Below, piece by piece: positions 1 to 5,713 of a DNA stretch of 5,713 nt; the stretch's first letter is position 1, and the number at the start of each line of letters is the position of its first letter. Source of the stretch: Zygophlyctis sp. KS116 (lineage: Eukaryota; Fungi; Chytridiomycota). The position numbers and the translations under genes are program-made. A model generated the notes under the pieces. It was given only the letters and a program-made list of their open reading frames with translations. It was not told the DNA's origin and searched no databases. The stretch covers positions 1-5,713 of the forward strand of contig BAAFSQ010000471.1 in NCBI GenBank assembly GCA_054661495.1, in the 5' to 3' direction.

Positions 1-135
1 CGGCGAATATAGAAGGTACCAACCTATAATTTGGTACTTAAACTTTTATGTATATATGCTCACTCTATACAAAATTTGGTATCTCTATCTAGTGTTTAAC
101 ATGTTGGTACCAGCTCGCCCAGGCCCAGAACCGCT

Positions 136-143
136 TATATAAA
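136..143 (+). promoter_or_regulatory. TATA-box-like TATATAAA upstream of ORF1
   Basis: Consensus match directly after a GC-rich patch (111-134); about 10 nt before ATG 153 and 40 nt before ATG 183. Confidence 0.3.
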
Positions 144-152
144 GATTTGACA

Positions 153-1421
153 ATGGACACCTCGTTTGGTTCTATCTACCCGATGAAAAGAGCCAGATCA
201 TATAGCTCCCCAGATCGATTTTCAAATCTGTGCAATCAGATTGCACCTTCTGAGGATTTTACTGAAATAGAATTTCTTACTCAATTTCAAAAAGATAATG
301 ATGAAGAATTAGAATTGGAAAAAAGTTCCCCTATTAAACTAGATGGAAAAGGAAATATTGAAGCAAAAATTATTCAATTAGAGCAAATGGTGCTTTCGTT
401 GAAAGAAACAGTGGATAGCTATGACAAAAAATTTGGAAAAATTGAGAAAGATGTGGATCGGAAACTTGAAGAAACTAATCAAAATTCTATCATGATTCTA
501 AATATATTAAAAGAGATGAAGATTAATTTTGAAAGAAAAGATACAATGATGGAAGAAAATATTGCGAAAGGGGGACTTAATAATCCCCTCAAAAAAGTAA
601 CATTTGCTAAGGTTGCCGCAGTTGATAAGAAAAAGTTAGAAATGGATGATGAATACGAAAAGAAATTAGTGGAATTTATGGGGATATCAAGAAAAACTGA
701 ACGGCGACAAATAGAAGCAGAAAAACCAGATGAATTGGAGGCAGTTTATATACAAGGATTTGGATCAACCATTTCCATAAGTAGAATTAAAAAGCATCTT
801 TTTGATCTACGTTTCTTATTATCAAAGATCAAAAATACTCGGAAAGTTGGACAGACGACAGTTGAATTTTTGGTTATGAAAAGCTACGCTAAAAGATTTA
901 GAGAAAGATTTGACGCCATGAGAGGACATTTTACGGTAATTACAGATTATGACCTTCTTAAAAATCCTTGGGAAATAGAACAATCAGAAACCGAATCTCA
1001 TAAAAAATTGAAAATTGTAACAGCCAAAATATTTAGAAGTGTGGACAATAGTCAGGACCAAACCGTCAAAGCATTCTTTAGAAATATTGTTAACAGTATG
1101 GGCCCAACTGCAAAGAATGAATTTAAAAAATTAGAAGAGCAAAAAACATCGTTCAATACTGAAAATGCCGGAATAGTAAATCCTGGAAAAAAAATTACAA
1201 AGGATGAAAATCCCAAAGAAAAAATAACTGGAAATAATAATGGTACGACAAATTCTGACCTTAATAACAAAAAAATTCATGACAACGTAGATAAAGTTGA
1301 AACTAAATCAAACGAGAACATGATGGGAGACCTGGAATATCTCAAGCTAAAAACTGTCAATCTAGATTCTGAATCTGAAATGGATTATAAAAATGACAAC
1401 GTAGATATTGATCAATTATGA
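153..1421 (+). CDS. LINE ORF1-like nucleic-acid-binding protein (coiled coil + putative RRM-like domain + low-complexity N/K/E/D tail)
   Basis: Long open frame (track opens at TTG 147; first ATG 153, second ATG 183). Heptad a/d pattern I71,I75,L78,V82,L85,V89,Y92,F96,I99,V103 (track numbering, nt ~357-470). TFAKVAA at 600-620. AVYIQGF...IKKHLFDL...VEFLV segment (nt ~735-956) has an RRM-like beta-alpha-beta-beta-alpha pattern. Lies upstream of pol. No CCHC knuckle. Confidence 0.8.
   Translation: MDTSFGSIYPMKRARSYSSPDRFSNLCNQIAPSEDFTEIEFLTQFQKDNDEELELEKSSPIKLDGKGNIEAKIIQLEQMVLSLKETVDSYDKKFGKIEKDVDRKLEETNQNSIMILNILKEMKINFERKDTMMEENIAKGGLNNPLKKVTFAKVAAVDKKKLEMDDEYEKKLVEFMGISRKTERRQIEAEKPDELEAVYIQGFGSTISISRIKKHLFDLRFLLSKIKNTRKVGQTTVEFLVMKSYAKRFRERFDAMRGHFTVITDYDLLKNPWEIEQSETESHKKLKIVTAKIFRSVDNSQDQTVKAFFRNIVNSMGPTAKNEFKKLEEQKTSFNTENAGIVNPGKKITKDENPKEKITGNNNGTTNSDLNNKKIHDNVDKVETKSNENMMGDLEYLKLKTVNLDSESEMDYKNDNVDIDQL
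1418..1421 (+). promoter_or_regulatory. ATGA start/stop overlap, ORF1 to middle ORF (putative termination-reinitiation site)
   Basis: TCAATTATGA: ATG 1418-1420, TGA 1419-1421. Confidence 0.7.
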
Positions 1422-2374
1422 TTAAAATCCTATACATAACATCGATCCCTAAGGATCATAATATAATATGGACCTTGAAGAATAAATCGGAAGCAAAAAT
1501 GATTCCAGATCAAACCCACCGTAAATCTAAAACTCTAAAGAAATATAATAAGTATTATTACCCGGAACACACAAATTCTATCTTCCTTTTGGAGCCGAAT
1601 TGGACCTTGAAATTTTACACAGTTCATAAACAACATAAAGTCTCTGACATACTTAAAAATCGCATCCCTAGCTTCAACCATCTTCAAACTGGTAATACAA
1701 CACGTAGTATTACAAAAATTGCAAATATTTTTCTTGATAATATAAGCTACAGAAGAGTTGGAAACTGGATTTTTAAGTATGATTTACAAGTATTGGTGAT
1801 TTATAAATGGAGAAAATTTCAAACAATTTGGAATAAGTATAAAGGTAACTATTCCATTGGGAACGAGACCAAGTCCCTCCAATTTTTATTGTTTCATACA
1901 CTTTTCATAGATAGATTGTTAATTGAAATATCATCTATTGGTGAAATATTAAAGTTGGATAATCAGAGAATATGGATTATGAATGGTCAAAATTACAAAA
2001 TTTTCATTGAATTGGCAAACGCTGATAACACTCCAAATTCTATCTTCCTTTTGGAGCCGAATTGGACCTTGAAATTTTACACAGTTCATAAACAACATAA
2101 AGTCTCTGACATACTTAAAAATCGCATCCCTAGCTTCAACCATCTTCAAACTGGTAATACAACACGTAGTATTACAAAAATTGCAAATATTTTTCTTGAT
2201 AATATAAGCTACAGAAGAGTTGGAAACTGGATTTTTAAGTATGATTTACAAGTATTGGTGATTTATAAATGGAGAAAATTTCAAACAATTTGGAATAAGT
2301 ATACAGATAGATTATTAATTCTCATATCTCTTATCGAAAAACCATCGGTTCATACAGATCTAAGTCAGTTATGA
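1418..2374 (+). CDS. Hypothetical 318-aa protein (extra middle ORF) with a duplicated ~89-aa module; function unknown
   Basis: 318 stop-free codons in AT-rich DNA. Its ATG overlaps the ORF1 stop and its TGA overlaps the pol ATG. The internal duplication (offset 462) and an apparent 66-nt indel both preserve frame. No family motif recognised. Confidence 0.7.
   Translation: MIKILYITSIPKDHNIIWTLKNKSEAKMIPDQTHRKSKTLKKYNKYYYPEHTNSIFLLEPNWTLKFYTVHKQHKVSDILKNRIPSFNHLQTGNTTRSITKIANIFLDNISYRRVGNWIFKYDLQVLVIYKWRKFQTIWNKYKGNYSIGNETKSLQFLLFHTLFIDRLLIEISSIGEILKLDNQRIWIMNGQNYKIFIELANADNTPNSIFLLEPNWTLKFYTVHKQHKVSDILKNRIPSFNHLQTGNTTRSITKIANIFLDNISYRRVGNWIFKYDLQVLVIYKWRKFQTIWNKYTDRLLILISLIEKPSVHTDLSQL
1572..1841 (+). 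repeat. 270-bp direct repeat, copy 1 (within middle ORF)
   Basis: CAAATTCTATCTTCC...GGAATAAGTATA; no mismatch to 2034-2303 found on manual comparison. Confidence 0.97.
2034..2303 (+). repeat. 270-bp direct repeat, copy 2 (within middle ORF)
   Basis: Matches 1572-1841 at offset 462 (154 codons); encodes the same NSIFLLEPNW...QTIWNKY peptide. Confidence 0.97.
2371..2374 (+). promoter_or_regulatory. ATGA start/stop overlap, middle ORF to pol (putative termination-reinitiation site)
   Basis: TCAGTTATGA: ATG 2371-2373, TGA 2372-2374. This Met sits where an APE domain should begin (MKLLYHNVNG). Confidence 0.75.
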
Positions 2375-5358
2375 AACTATTATACCACAACGTTAATGGA
2401 CTTGATCTTGCTAAGTTAAGATCTATAGAAACATTCCTCGCATCTTCAGATGAAGATATCTTATACGTTATCAGTGAACATTGGTTTAGCCAATTTCTTA
2501 GACTTCAAGAATCTCGATTCTTCATAGAATCATCAAAATGGCTAGAGAACCCACGTATCATTGGTCATCAAAATGGTGGTATGGCTGTTCTTGGCTCCAT
2601 ATCTCTTCTCAGTCAAGTACACGTTGAAATAACTTCTGACTACACAATAAGAATAAATGTTGTAGACAAACAGATTCTGGCTGTATATCTCCCCCCAAGC
2701 ATGAATGATTCTGAAGTGAAATACATCCTAACCGATAAGTCAAATACAAACATCGATACCTTGCTAGGAGATATAAATGTTCGTTTCGGCAAAATAATGA
2801 AAGACACTAGAACTTGGAATCTTAATAGAGGAGAGCTAATTTGTAAAACATTGAACTTCCATGGAATGGATATAATACCATGTCGAATTGGTACATCAGG
2901 AAATGATCATGTATTCTCTAAATCTCATGTAGAGTGGACATATACAACCAAAGAATTATTAGACTATAAATCTGATCATGGGCGAATGGAGCTAATACTA
3001 GAAGACAAATGTCAAAACAAGGATAAAAAAGCAAACCGTTCCTCTCCGGAAAAACGATTTGCCTTCAGTATCCTCAAGGATGACACTCTCCGAAAACTCA
3101 TTAAACACGACTGGATTTCCAGGCAATACATTTTGTTTGAAGTAACTGGAAAGACATACTATGAACTTAAAAAAGGAAACTTTCAGGATTTGCAAATTAG
3201 GAATATCGTAGATACTATCTATGATTTGTTCTCGCACCAAATCTATGATCTTTGTAAAACTCACTTTCCAGTCTACGACCCTGAAGATATAAAGACGAAA
3301 AGTTTTGACAATCATATAGATTCTCAATGTTCCACACTCAATGCAATAAGAATATTCAAAAGATCACAACGGGCAACAGCACAAAATTGTAAGTTCAAAG
3401 CTACAGGAACAGATGTGGTACAAGAAGCTACAGAATTTTATTCATCTCTTTATCATGAAGAATTTGATTCAGAAACTTTGACTAGTAACATTTTCAATGA
3501 CAGGTCTCTGAATACTTGGAAGACTTGTGGCGATGAAGTTCACGAAACTTTAGTCAAGTACAGCTCAGCTAAAGCCAGTGGTCCAGATGGAATATCTACA
3601 CGCCTCCTTAAAGTTCTTAATGAAGTAAAAGGCTTCTCTGATCTAATAGCAGAACTTTTTAATATATTCCTAGAATTCTCCAATACGCCTTCTATATGGA
3701 ATATATCTAGAATACACTTACTTATGAAAGACAAAGATGTGCCGTTTGTTTCTAACTCAAGGCCTATCTCCCTTACAATCATTTTGAGAAGAATATTTGA
3801 AAAGATTATTCTCAAAAAGGCTTTGAAAGAGCAGTGGAGCCAACTACATCCAAGTCAGGCTGGATTTAGACATGGTTGGAGTACATTATCACATATTCTA
3901 TTGAATGACGAATTGAGCAGAGGCAAAGGCATGATTTCAGCATACTTGGATCTAAAAAATGCATTTGATACTGTTAATCATGGTTATTTAGTAAAAATCC
4001 TTCATGATAGGAAAGTACAATCTCATGTTATTCAACTTATACAATCATTAATGCTTCGAAACTGTAAATCCAGTTTAGAGATCAACGGGTTGGTTGCTGC
4101 TTCACTCATTCAAAGAACTAGAGGGCTTTTTCAGGGCAGTATCCTCTCTCCATTTCTCTTTAATCTGGTAATTGATACGTTAGCTCAGGATGTGACTCGA
4201 ATCTTGCCGCAAACTACTATATTGTTATTTGCCGATGATATAGTTATAAAAACAGAAACTTGGTCGGAAATGCAAAAAGCAATTAACATATGTTATTCAT
4301 GGAGCATTAAGGCTAAATTGAAGTGGGGTATTAATAAATGTGGGATAGTAACAGGAAAAGATCCCTTCTCGATCATCCTTGGAGAGGAAGTTTTACCACA
4401 GGTCAACACTTATAAATACTTAGGGGTACCATTCACGTCCAAAGGAGTTGACTGGAGATCATACACCCAAAAAATTACTGAAAAAAGTGCAAGATTCCTT
4501 AAACACATACGAGCATACTCTATAAATTGGCCAATCAAACTTAAAATAGTCATATTTAAAACTTTTGTTAGACCAATCAGCGAGTATGCACTACCACTTC
4601 TAACCAGATGGATCACTAAGCAACCAGACTCAGACGTACTACTCAAAACATTGATAGAATCATATATTGATGGAATTCAATTTATATTTGGAAAAAGACA
4701 ACCTTTGACACTGTTGGAATCATTAGCTGGTCTCGGGACGTATAGATTTAGAATACTACAATTAGAAGCTTCTCTGGCGAGACATCTCCAAGAGATGCGC
4801 CCTCCCAATCCACTTTATACCTACATGAACCAAAACTTTATATCGGATAGTCGGAATTTTATAATCTCGAAATGTAAGTCAAGTGAATTATGGAAAAAAT
4901 GGACTCATTACAAGAAAATGGAGAAGTTCCCACTAAAATACAATACATGGCTAAAACACGAAAAATATGATGACCAAACTCAACAGATAGGCAAACTACA
5001 TAGATATATTTTCCATAGATGCAAAAATCGGGCTGGAATGGATAATATTCTTAACCAAACAGGAATAATCTTAAAAAAAGGAATATTATGGAGATCTAAC
5101 GTTGCATTTAGTAATACCACATGTCCTATTTGTACCAGAAAATTCAATCGAGCACATCTTCTTAGATGTGACCTCTACTCACTTTTAGGAATTGGATTTG
5201 AAGATATCTCTGTAACCAAAGCCTTCCAGGCAGACCTTAAGGAACTCAAAACCCAAAAGCTTGCTGAAAATTATACATTATTAGATTACTATCTCAATAA
5301 TGAAGACTACATACTATTCCAGACCATATATGATCAAGTTAAAGCTATTCTATGTTAA
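2371..5358 (+). CDS. Non-LTR retrotransposon pol/ORF2-type protein: APE (EEP) endonuclease + reverse transcriptase + C-terminal CCHC-type zinc motif
   Basis: APE motifs YHNVNGL, ISEHW, GGMAVL, AVYLPP, LGDINV, NDHVF, SDH (2971-2979). RT motifs ASGPDGI (GPDG at 3580), RPISL, QAGFR, YLDLKNAFDTV, GLFQGSILSPFLFN, FADD (4228-4239), INKC, YKYLG (4411-4425). CPICTRKFNRAHLLRC = CX2CX7HX3C (5122-5169). No RNase H recognised. Confidence 0.97.
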   Translation: MKLLYHNVNGLDLAKLRSIETFLASSDEDILYVISEHWFSQFLRLQESRFFIESSKWLENPRIIGHQNGGMAVLGSISLLSQVHVEITSDYTIRINVVDKQILAVYLPPSMNDSEVKYILTDKSNTNIDTLLGDINVRFGKIMKDTRTWNLNRGELICKTLNFHGMDIIPCRIGTSGNDHVFSKSHVEWTYTTKELLDYKSDHGRMELILEDKCQNKDKKANRSSPEKRFAFSILKDDTLRKLIKHDWISRQYILFEVTGKTYYELKKGNFQDLQIRNIVDTIYDLFSHQIYDLCKTHFPVYDPEDIKTKSFDNHIDSQCSTLNAIRIFKRSQRATAQNCKFKATGTDVVQEATEFYSSLYHEEFDSETLTSNIFNDRSLNTWKTCGDEVHETLVKYSSAKASGPDGISTRLLKVLNEVKGFSDLIAELFNIFLEFSNTPSIWNISRIHLLMKDKDVPFVSNSRPISLTIILRRIFEKIILKKALKEQWSQLHPSQAGFRHGWSTLSHILLNDELSRGKGMISAYLDLKNAFDTVNHGYLVKILHDRKVQSHVIQLIQSLMLRNCKSSLEINGLVAASLIQRTRGLFQGSILSPFLFNLVIDTLAQDVTRILPQTTILLFADDIVIKTETWSEMQKAINICYSWSIKAKLKWGINKCGIVTGKDPFSIILGEEVLPQVNTYKYLGVPFTSKGVDWRSYTQKITEKSARFLKHIRAYSINWPIKLKIVIFKTFVRPISEYALPLLTRWITKQPDSDVLLKTLIESYIDGIQFIFGKRQPLTLLESLAGLGTYRFRILQLEASLARHLQEMRPPNPLYTYMNQNFISDSRNFIISKCKSSELWKKWTHYKKMEKFPLKYNTWLKHEKYDDQTQQIGKLHRYIFHRCKNRAGMDNILNQTGIILKKGILWRSNVAFSNTTCPICTRKFNRAHLLRCDLYSLLGIGFEDISVTKAFQADLKELKTQKLAENYTLLDYYLNNEDYILFQTIYDQVKAILC

Positions 5359-5361
5359 AAT

Positions 5362-5424
5362 CCAGTTACCTTCCTCTCACTGAGAGGTTTAATGGAAACT
5401 GGTCTTAGGTTTTTACACCTAGGA
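5362..5424 (+). other. Two adjacent stem-loops in the 3' UTR
   Basis: CCAGTTACC (5362-5370) pairs with GGAAACTGG (5394-5402, 8/9), enclosing CCTCTC-ACT-GAGAGG (5373-5387). Then TCTTAGGT (5403-5410) pairs with ACCTAGGA (5417-5424, one G-U). Confidence 0.7.
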
Positions 5425-5442
5425 TATAAATTTAAAAGTTAA

Positions 5443-5448
5443 AATAAA
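5443..5448 (+). promoter_or_regulatory. AATAAA polyadenylation-like signal
   Basis: AATAAA 11 nt before the CCTAACCC tract; the AT-rich context lowers its significance. Confidence 0.45.
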
Positions 5449-5453
5449 GTATC

Positions 5454-5713
5454 TTACTTCCTAACCCTAACCCTAGGTCTTGCGTCCGGAAATGTAGGGT
5501 CTGCGTCCGGAAAACTAGGTCTTGCGTCCGGATTACTAGGTCTTGCGTCCGGAAATGTAGGGTCTGCGTCCGGAAAACTAGGTCTTGCGTCCGGAAATGT
5601 AGGGTCTGCGTCCGGAAAACTAGGTCTTGCGTCCGGATTGGCAGCTGGCTGATGAATTTTCTTATTGATACAAAAGTTACGTGTAATTGTCAATTTATCG
5701 AGGTTACTTTCTG
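5454..5713 (-). CDS. Possible 3' end of a minus-strand ORF encoding Pro/Asp heptapeptide repeats (may be only a by-product of the array)
   Basis: Frame stays open from the right window edge (ESNLDKLTITRNF...) through PDARPSF/PDADPTF repeats to RVRVRK-stop. No ATG inside the window. Confidence 0.25.
   Translation of the reverse strand, partial: ESNLDKLTITRNFCINKKIHQPAANPDARPSFPDADPTFPDARPSFPDADPTFPDARPSNPDARPSFPDADPTFPDARPRVRVRK
5460..5475. repeat. Short telomeric-type tract (CCCTAA/TTAGGG, ~2.7 units)
   Basis: CCTAACCCTAACCCTA, a perfect 16-nt match to (CCCTAA)n. Confidence 0.8.
5473..5640. repeat. Tandem array of 8 x 21 bp, order A-B-C-A-B-A-B-C'
   Basis: A=CTAGGTCTTGCGTCCGGAAAT, B=GTAGGGTCTGCGTCCGGAAAA, C=CTAGGTCTTGCGTCCGGATTA (C' ends ATTG). 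Invariant core TGCGTCCGGA; no spacers. Confidence 0.97.

Follow-up and report, generated by a model that had tools for sequence, protein, structure and literature searches.

A chytrid LINE with three open reading frames chained by overlapping stop and start codons

We analyzed a stretch of 5,713 nucleotides from the chytrid fungus Zygophlyctis sp. KS116, hereafter the window, which is an entire 5.7-kb contig (C471) of the 12.7-Mb genome assembly. The window carries an intact member of a chytrid clade of long interspersed nuclear elements (LINEs). On its plus strand, three open reading frames (ORFs) follow one another with zero spacer: ORF1 (147/153..1421, with its ATG at 153), a middle ORF (1418..2374) and pol (2371..5358), each later ORF being in the −1 frame relative to the preceding one. 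The explanation that we prefer, and to which we give a little better than an even chance, is that the three chained ORFs lie on one RNA and are translated by serial termination-reinitiation, the middle ORF being mainly an open conduit. Under this explanation, translation of a single full-length RNA would begin at ORF1, and ribosomes terminating at each stop codon would reinitiate a few nucleotides away, on the middle ORF first and then on pol, so that much ORF1 protein and little pol would be made. The middle ORF would be maintained not as a protein under ordinary constraint but, in the main, as an open frame through which ribosomes get to the start of pol and which carries a nucleotide-conserved element.

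The chain and its relatives

The initial annotation of this DNA had described three contiguous ORFs (153-1421, 1418-2374 and 2371-5358) with ATGA at both junctions, and the ORF list and the contigs that bridge the junctions bear this out. The middle frame contains no stop codons in 954 nt, compared to 12-44 in the other five frames and an expectation of 25 from shuffled sequences. Contigs from three other public DNA sequencing runs cover positions 142-1602 and 2274-4313 with 0-3 differences, and a metagenome contig that is 97% identical to the window (L151) is colinear with positions 1784-3359. Because the run contigs and L151 bridge the junctions, the three-ORF chain is real and not a product of assembly; the observation is confirmed as neither chance nor artefact.

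In what follows, W denotes the window element, C-numbers denote contigs of the same genome, and L-numbers denote loci on metagenome or genome contigs. Sister elements with pol proteins 45-50% identical are found in the same genome on C385, C454, C380, C590, C602, C792 and C745, and relatives of ORF1 on C790, C661 and C454. Lake metagenomes contribute further members: L147 is of the C454 type, L149/L150 are of the C380 type, L151 is of the window type, and L152 is a complete member of the C790 type. In each of nine lineages, the frame directly upstream of pol is an ORF other than ORF1 that contains no stop codons, while 11-31 would be expected in the middle frame and the other frames have 4-44 each. 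The overlap between ORF1 and the middle ORF is 4 to 29 nt wherever the contig is long enough to show it (W, C790/L152, C454/L147 and C661), with 11 to 29 nt in those where it is longer than ATGA. Thus, of the conservation among relatives that the initial annotation had raised, the chained three-ORF layout holds in nine lineages, but ATGA itself varies.

In the pol tree, the three-ORF elements form a crown clade with a support of 100 in the Shimodaira-Hasegawa-like approximate likelihood ratio test (SH-aLRT). The outgroups L070/L069, L086 and C380b have pol directly after ORF1, with the stop and start codons again overlapping. L148, one lineage nested inside the crown clade, has no middle ORF, and its ORF1 and pol meet at ATGA; a placement of L148 outside the clade of all three-ORF elements was rejected by the approximately unbiased test (p 0.012), for a group that was named after the tree had been seen. 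The middle ORFs of W and L152 are homologous (29% identity over 252 aa, E 2e-12), and therefore one gain and one loss of the middle ORF appear to be the simplest history. Since the bicistronic elements L148, L070, L086 and C380b share the overlapping stop and start codons, the coupling is probably older than the middle ORF. The initial annotation had counted sister copies without a middle ORF as evidence against its proposal; nine lineages keep the open frame and only the nested L148 is without it. The middle ORF is dispensable in this one lineage, in which ORF1 and pol are unharmed.

Junctions and the middle ORF

The junction into pol reads ATGA in W, C625 and L148, ATGTTAG in L152 and C602, ATGTTGA in C792, ATGGATATTCTGA in C590, and ATTTTAA in C454/L147, C385 and C380/L149. 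In all lineages, the upstream stop codon lies 1-13 nt after the position of the pol start (ATG or its ATT equivalent), and pol is in the −1 frame. The conserved feature of the junction is this geometry, not ATGA. A motif, AGAT(C/A), is found at −16 or −17 from the stop codon in 11 of the 11 crown-clade junctions into pol, including that of L148, and is absent in the outgroups. A motif of similar kind, (A/T)GAT(A/C), precedes the junctions between ORF1 and the middle ORF. Its presence at both junctions suggests that the middle ORF may have arisen by insertion into an older ORF1-pol junction, by which the junction and the AGAT(C/A) motif were duplicated.

The group of elements with ATT (C454/L147, C385 and C380/L149) is monophyletic, with a SH-aLRT support of 99. 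The first in-frame ATG of pol in this group is found 71-163 codons downstream of the junction. It should be noted that, in the first 71 pol codons, the proportion of nonsynonymous differences (pN) is ~0.2 compared to 0.66-0.94 for synonymous differences (pS), which is indicative of purifying selection; therefore, these codons are translated, with initiation at the junction on a codon other than AUG. Pol of the ATT clade appears to start without AUG right at the upstream stop codon, and this comparison favours termination-reinitiation over scanning, frameshifting and leaky scanning. Near-cognate start codons are known to be accepted in coupled reinitiation, though less efficiently (PMC10275272).

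The middle ORF had been taken for the gene of a third protein; we found no protein-like constraint in it, the codon positions being flat and the ratio of nonsynonymous to synonymous rates (dN/dS) 0.6-2.4. Between W and L151, the substitutions in the first, second and third codon positions number 9/7/6 in the middle ORF and 2/4/15 in pol; between C380 and L149, the corresponding numbers are 11/9/17 and 19/15/89. The dN/dS values of the middle ORF in these two comparisons, 2.4 and 0.6, are based on few substitutions (22 and 37) and are not significantly different from 1; those of pol are 0.13 and 0.12. At the greater distance between W and L152, the identities by codon position are.56/.50/.54 in the middle ORF and.54/.65/.38 in pol. 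Counted over all sites, the middle region has diverged about half as much as the synonymous sites of pol, which points to some constraint on this region at the nucleotide level. Taken as a pattern of substitutions, the middle ORF looks more like a translated conduit than like a normal protein: a frame that is open and ends at the pol start, while its protein drifts, is expected if ribosomes must traverse the middle ORF to reach pol.

Searches with the encoded protein gave few matches. Pfam returned nothing credible for the middle ORF of the window or for the six middle ORFs that were scanned, and a HMMER search of 1.84 billion representative proteins returned three relatives only (P0121-P0123), all of them from sister elements. 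In the ESM Atlas, language-model recognition of the middle ORF was low and gave no lead. The AlphaFold model has no confident fold (predicted local distance difference test score, pLDDT, 33), with an alignment of 6 rows only. Rfam and tRNA scans of the window gave no match.

All of the middle ORFs consist of tandem units with lengths that are multiples of three, with 49, 53, ~80 or 154 codons per unit in different lineages. In W, the units form a direct repeat of 276 nt, and the second unit is without the 66-nt piece equivalent to 1845-1910; L152 also has two units with the same period of 462 nt. The middle ORFs of W and L152 are ~53% identical, although the units within each are 99% and 95% identical to each other, respectively; thus, the units evolve in concert. 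An element of ~70 nt (1841-1915) stands out by its conservation: its identity to copies in C454, C661, L152 and C602 is 75-82% at the nucleotide level, whereas its flanks cannot be aligned. Synonymous sites are conserved in this element as well, and there are one to three copies of it per middle ORF. Its consensus fold consists of two weak hairpins only, with no convincing covariation and no Rfam match.

Several points weigh against the explanation by serial reinitiation through a conduit. L148 is an intact ORF1-pol element that needs no middle ORF. The small substitution counts behind the dN/dS values and the shallow alignment behind the low AlphaFold confidence limit what can be drawn from either, and the alignment of W and L152 over 252 aa, with a common two-unit period of 154 aa, could reflect a real, fast-evolving protein. 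No RNA fold that beats shuffled sequences was detected within 100 nt on either side of 12 junctions (z −1.4 to +1.5); since SART1 and caliciviruses need elements near the junction, the missing predicted structure counts against the explanation. The element was found in none of the RNA runs searched, and therefore the single mRNA, the stepped stoichiometry and the reinitiation are inferred.

Alternative explanations and known systems

We rank serial reinitiation through an open conduit first, and its main rival keeps the same coupled translation but takes the middle ORF to be a genuine, fast-evolving accessory protein of two repeats, engaged, for example, in an arms race between host and element. 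We consider this rival unlikely, though by no means negligible. An accessory protein would account for the open middle frame in nine lineages, for the common motifs and the conserved two-unit architecture of 154 aa in the alignment of W and L152, and for the prediction of the ORF by metagenome gene callers (P0121-P0123); a dN/dS at or above 1 is also given by diversifying selection. However, the conservation shows no codon-position periodicity, be it recent or deep, and in the stretch with the strongest conservation, synonymous sites are conserved as well. The repeat units differ wholly between lineages, neither a domain nor a fold nor language-model recognition speaks for a protein, and the loss in L148 left ORF1 and pol unharmed. 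An explanation of another kind reads the motif 16 nt before the stop codon as a splice acceptor, AG|ATC, such that spliced subgenomic RNAs, or a fusion produced by splicing, would serve to express pol and perhaps the middle ORF; the clade without ATG would then be accounted for as well. The NAG|AT(C/A) sequence is invariant and at a fixed position before the crown-clade junctions into pol, in L148 and C380 the pol frame is already closed a short way upstream of the motif, and a 66-nt piece bounded by GT..AG is precisely missing from unit 2. We nevertheless regard splicing as improbable, since neither a donor nor a branch point nor a pyrimidine tract is conserved upstream of the motif, and none of the DNA copies or contig joints in four runs ends at 2356. 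Moreover, the upstream frame in every lineage is open through the motif to a stop codon whose position coincides exactly with the pol start, a placement that splicing does not call for. As for the 66-nt piece as an intron, another copy lacks the GT at the same place, no corresponding joint was seen in the DNA runs, and the element measures 70 nt in C454, so that it would not be a frame-preserving intron there.

Pol and the middle ORF might also be initiated each on its own, through an internal ribosome entry site (IRES) or an internal promoter, with the overlaps reflecting mere compaction. Internal entry is a matter of discussion in other LINEs (PMC3894237), the middle region contains a nucleotide-conserved element, and pol of L148 directly follows ORF1. 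Conversely, such initiation leaves unexplained the frame that is open in nine lineages without protein constraint, the constant abutment of the middle-ORF stop and the pol start, and the recognition of an ATT start; in addition, the conserved element's junction-proximal copy has been lost in W, and no structure is predicted near the junctions. We give independent initiation very little credence. Programmed −1 frameshifting at both junctions, which would produce ORF1-middle-pol fusions in the manner of gag-pol, has the least credence of all. The −1 step from each ORF to its successor agrees with it, and a fusion needs no AUG, which fits the ATT clade. However, the −1 overlap windows at the junctions, 6-60 nt long, contain no slippery heptamer (X XXY YYZ), the open middle frame of W begins only 2 codons (6 nt) ahead of its ATG, those of pol in L148, L152 and C380 begin only 5-6 codons ahead of the junction, and no downstream structure is predicted. 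Two further candidates were rejected. Leaky scanning is excluded by the intervening ATG triplets, of which W has 29 and 9 before its two downstream starts. A termination upstream ribosomal binding site (TURBS) was considered in view of a UGGGA in the conserved element; this pentamer is far from the junctions (90-500 nt), and the junction-proximal unit of W does not have it.

Serial reinitiation through a conduit carries a more specific corollary that we advance tentatively. An ORF of ~300-400 codons may be selected to stay open only to hand ribosomes from ORF1 to pol, which would amount to an obligate two-step termination-reinitiation relay inside a cellular element of a eukaryote, with a natural AUU reinitiation codon in one clade and with AGAUC, 16 nt before each stop codon, as a new reinitiation-promoting site. 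It is a matter of speculation that AGAUC pairs with GAUC near the 3' end of 18S rRNA.

Among the closest known systems is SART1, a telomere-specific LINE of the R1 clade from Bombyx mori, for which UAAUG stop-start coupling is described (Kojima et al. 2005, cited in PMC3894237 and PMC10275272). SART1 is a LINE with an apurinic/apyrimidinic endonuclease (APE), as the window element probably is; like the window element, it is associated with telomeric repeats and has its next ORF start placed without a spacer on the ORF1 stop codon, which is read as termination-reinitiation. It differs in that it has two ORFs, ends in poly(A) and requires a downstream RNA structure, whereas the window family has three ORFs, junctions of ATGA, ATGTTAG or ATTTTAA, no predicted structure, a CCCTAA tail and AGATC 16 nt before the stop codon. 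Among plant pararetroviruses, cauliflower mosaic virus (CaMV) reinitiates after long ORFs when activated by its transactivator TAV, and RTBV (rice tungro bacilliform virus) and badnaviruses have three consecutive ORFs whose stop and start codons are fused or overlap by a short stretch, an AUU start of ORF I and leaky scanning (PMC5902531). The likeness is in reverse transcription, a full-length RNA with at least three consecutive long ORFs, overlapping stop and start codons and a natural AUU start. These are, however, plant viruses and not LINEs; RTBV needs ORFs I and II to be free of ATG, which those of the window element are not, and CaMV requires a viral transactivator, while none is recognisable in the window element. 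Termination-reinitiation at UAAUG or AUGA, with TURBS, is also described for caliciviruses, influenza B virus and hypoviruses or victoriviruses (PMC10275272, PMC2699510). These viruses share with the window family the stop-start overlap after a long ORF and, with reduced efficiency, the tolerance of near-cognate starts; they have a TURBS (UGGGA on a stem) or a pseudoknot near the junction, whereas the window family conserves a primary motif, AGATC, only.

Other LINEs are less similar in their organization. The L1/Tad-like elements have an ORF1 protein with a coiled coil and an RRM, to which the predicted long helix and RRM-like fold of the window ORF1 are similar, and the pol of the window element has a probable APE-like domain, a reverse transcriptase (RT) and a C-terminal CCHC-type motif, as theirs does; compared to these, the window element has no Pfam ORF1p match, no RNase H and an extra sense ORF. 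The additional ORFs of L1 described in one paper, ORF0 and the reverse ORFs, are antisense (PMC5203782). The fungal telomere-associated LINEs MoTeR, FoTeR and Cnl1 (CRE clade) have a single ORF with a C-terminal restriction-enzyme-like (REL) endonuclease (PMC12857005). They resemble the window family as fungal non-LTR (long terminal repeat) elements tied to telomere repeats; in the window family, however, the telomere-type repeat is itself the 3' tail, the ORFs number two or three, and the putative endonuclease domain, of APE-like type, is N-terminal. A limited search of the literature, which is no proof of absence, gave no LINE in which a sense middle ORF is conserved.

Stop-start coupling in a LINE (SART1) and chains of three overlapping ORFs (plant pararetroviruses) were known already. 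To our knowledge, few cases of efficient reinitiation after long ORFs exist in eukaryotes, most of them viral, and among LINEs only SART1 has been dissected. The family is a natural comparative series, with relatives of two and three ORFs, AUG and AUU starts, stop codons 1 to 13 nt off, a fixed pentamer, and an open frame with a drifting protein, which makes the rules of coupled translation testable with reporters. It shows how a retroelement can gain and lose an entire ORF at a coupled junction, and it adds a family of telomere-repeat-tailed LINEs, probably of the APE type, from early-diverging fungi.

Encoded proteins, element ends and neighbouring repeats

The features of the window are collected in Table 1. 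The RT of pol was recognized by Pfam (RVT_1, E 1.4e-30), and profile matches to the Protein Data Bank (PDB) include R2 RTs at 5e-36 and also group II intron RTs. Twelve residues of pol are invariant across the relatives (E36, Y106, D134, N136, D179, H180, D202, H203, C918, C921, H929 and C933), and N7 is nearly so; we take those in the N-terminal part to correspond to the catalytic set of the L1 endonuclease (L1-EN). The pol of the window itself has no Pfam endonuclease match; among 20 pol proteins of relatives, Exo_endo_phos_2 was matched by 8 (best E 2e-4) and Exo_endo_phos by 3, all below the curated cut-off. The N-terminus of pol (~aa 1-240) is therefore described here as APE-like and divergent, a probable assignment. 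There is no REL endonuclease at the C-terminus, which has a CCHC-type motif only, and the endonuclease-like residues are N-terminal. In the AlphaFold model of ORF1, a helix (aa 67-136) is followed by a beta-alpha-beta-beta-alpha-beta domain (aa 195-263, pLDDT 80-90), for which the top Foldseek matches are RRM domains, with weak scores (E 0.03-0.1). ORF1 has no match to a Pfam ORF1p family, and its core is kept in all relatives, including the bicistronic ones. The model is consistent with a coiled coil and an RRM-like domain.

Table 1. Features of the window (position 1 is its first letter)
Feature	Position	Strand	Basis
Upstream repeat unit, ending in GCTTATATAA; outside the element	1..142	+	sharp copy ends, joints
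5' untranslated region (UTR), ~10 nt	143..152	+	boundary from ends of the upstream repeat and contig joints
ORF1, 422 aa; predicted coiled coil, then RRM-like domain	153..1421	+	ORF list, AlphaFold, Foldseek
AGATA motif, 16 nt ahead of the ORF1 stop	1403..1407	+	junction alignment
Junction 1, ATGA; ORF1 stop overlapped by middle-ORF start	1418..1421	+	bridged by contigs of 3 runs
Middle ORF, 318 aa; open, without protein-type constraint	1418..2374	+	ORF list, stop counts, substitution patterns
Tandem unit 1, period 462 nt	1572..1847	+	direct-repeat search
Nucleotide-conserved element; 66-nt core 1845-1910, bounded by GT..AG and lacking in unit 2	1841..1915	+	nucleotide comparison
Tandem unit 2, 99% identical to unit 1	2034..2309	+	direct-repeat search; confirmed in independent contig L151
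AGATC motif, fixed 16 nt ahead of the middle-ORF stop	2356..2360	+	11 crown-clade junctions
Junction 2, ATGA; middle-ORF stop overlapped by pol start	2371..2374	+	bridged by run contigs and L151
pol, 995 aa; divergent APE-like N-terminus (~aa 1-240), RT, C-terminal CX2CX7HX3C	2371..5358	+	Pfam, profiles, invariant residues
RT in pol, aa 456-687	3736-4431	+	RVT_1
CX2CX7HX3C in pol, aa 918-933	5122-5169	+	alignment of relatives
3' UTR with family-conserved terminus ..AAAGTATCTTACTT	5359..5459	+	comparison of copies
CCCTAA tail, 2.5 units, in place of poly(A)	5460..5477	+	comparison of copies
21-nt tandem repeats, 7.9 copies; flanking DNA outside the element	5473..5637	+	repeat search
5'-truncated piece of C790-type middle ORF; next element in the array	5638..5713	+	97% to C790:2030-2106; translation matches C790 middle ORF

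The element extends from ~143 to 5477 and ends in CCCTAA units, with no poly(A); what flanks it is other repeats and contig ends. All members of the clade have a conserved terminus (AAATCTCTTAC[T/C]T) followed by 1.5 to ~7 CCCTAA units and no poly(A); the termini compared were those of the window (5359-5477), L152:4496-4560, L041 (C590):3673-3800 and L064 (C454):3737-3850. In run X4, the CCCTAA tail is longer than that of the window copy. The traits of the element are those of a non-LTR element, i.e., absence of LTRs, a common 3' end, variable 5' truncation and a simple-repeat tail, and the contig joints 141>4221 and 144>2343 in the DNA runs fit 5'-truncated copies. The joint 144>2343 occurs in runs X2 and X3. 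In a copy that is 87% identical, L002 (C625):1-3460, ORF1 is gone, as is almost the entire middle ORF (the loss being equivalent to 145-2329); its joint has 15 filler bases, and its pol has one in-frame TGA.

Elements of the clade are arranged head to tail. The repeat upstream of the window element (1-142) has ~20 genomic copies with sharp ends at 142-145, after which unrelated sequences follow, and loose contig ends were found at 142 in four runs. In C745 and C385, this repeat sits after a CCCTAA tail and shows variable 5' truncation. Bases 1-142 thus appear to behave as the 3' end of a different retroposon or a common upstream neighbour would; their role as a leader or promoter of the element was rejected, since the ~20 copies end sharply and are followed by unrelated sequences. 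As 1-142 belongs to another repeat, the 5' UTR of the element is only ~10 nt long; in C454 and C790, 12-27 nt separate the upstream unit from the ATG of ORF1. The end of the upstream repeat is TATA-like and lies ~10 nt ahead of the first base of the element. Downstream, the 21-nt array (5473-5637) has a higher-order unit of 63 nt and is also present on C341, C590 and C745, where it adjoins elements of the clade. The C790-type fragment (5638-5713) directly adjoins this array.

More distant elements join ORF1 and pol in other ways as well. A distant metagenomic clade with pol ~30% identical (L073:471-5462, L074:334-5307, L079:78-4733, L083:849-5912, L075, L076, L082 and L089) has ORF1 and pol in the same frame with a single TAA or TAG between them, and pol is without a nearby ATG in L073, L074, L079, L083 and L075; the design appears to be readthrough-like. 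A different, distant two-ORF LINE of the same genome, L066 (C380):13-4463, with an RT ~33% identical, has ORF1 and pol joined by ATGA.

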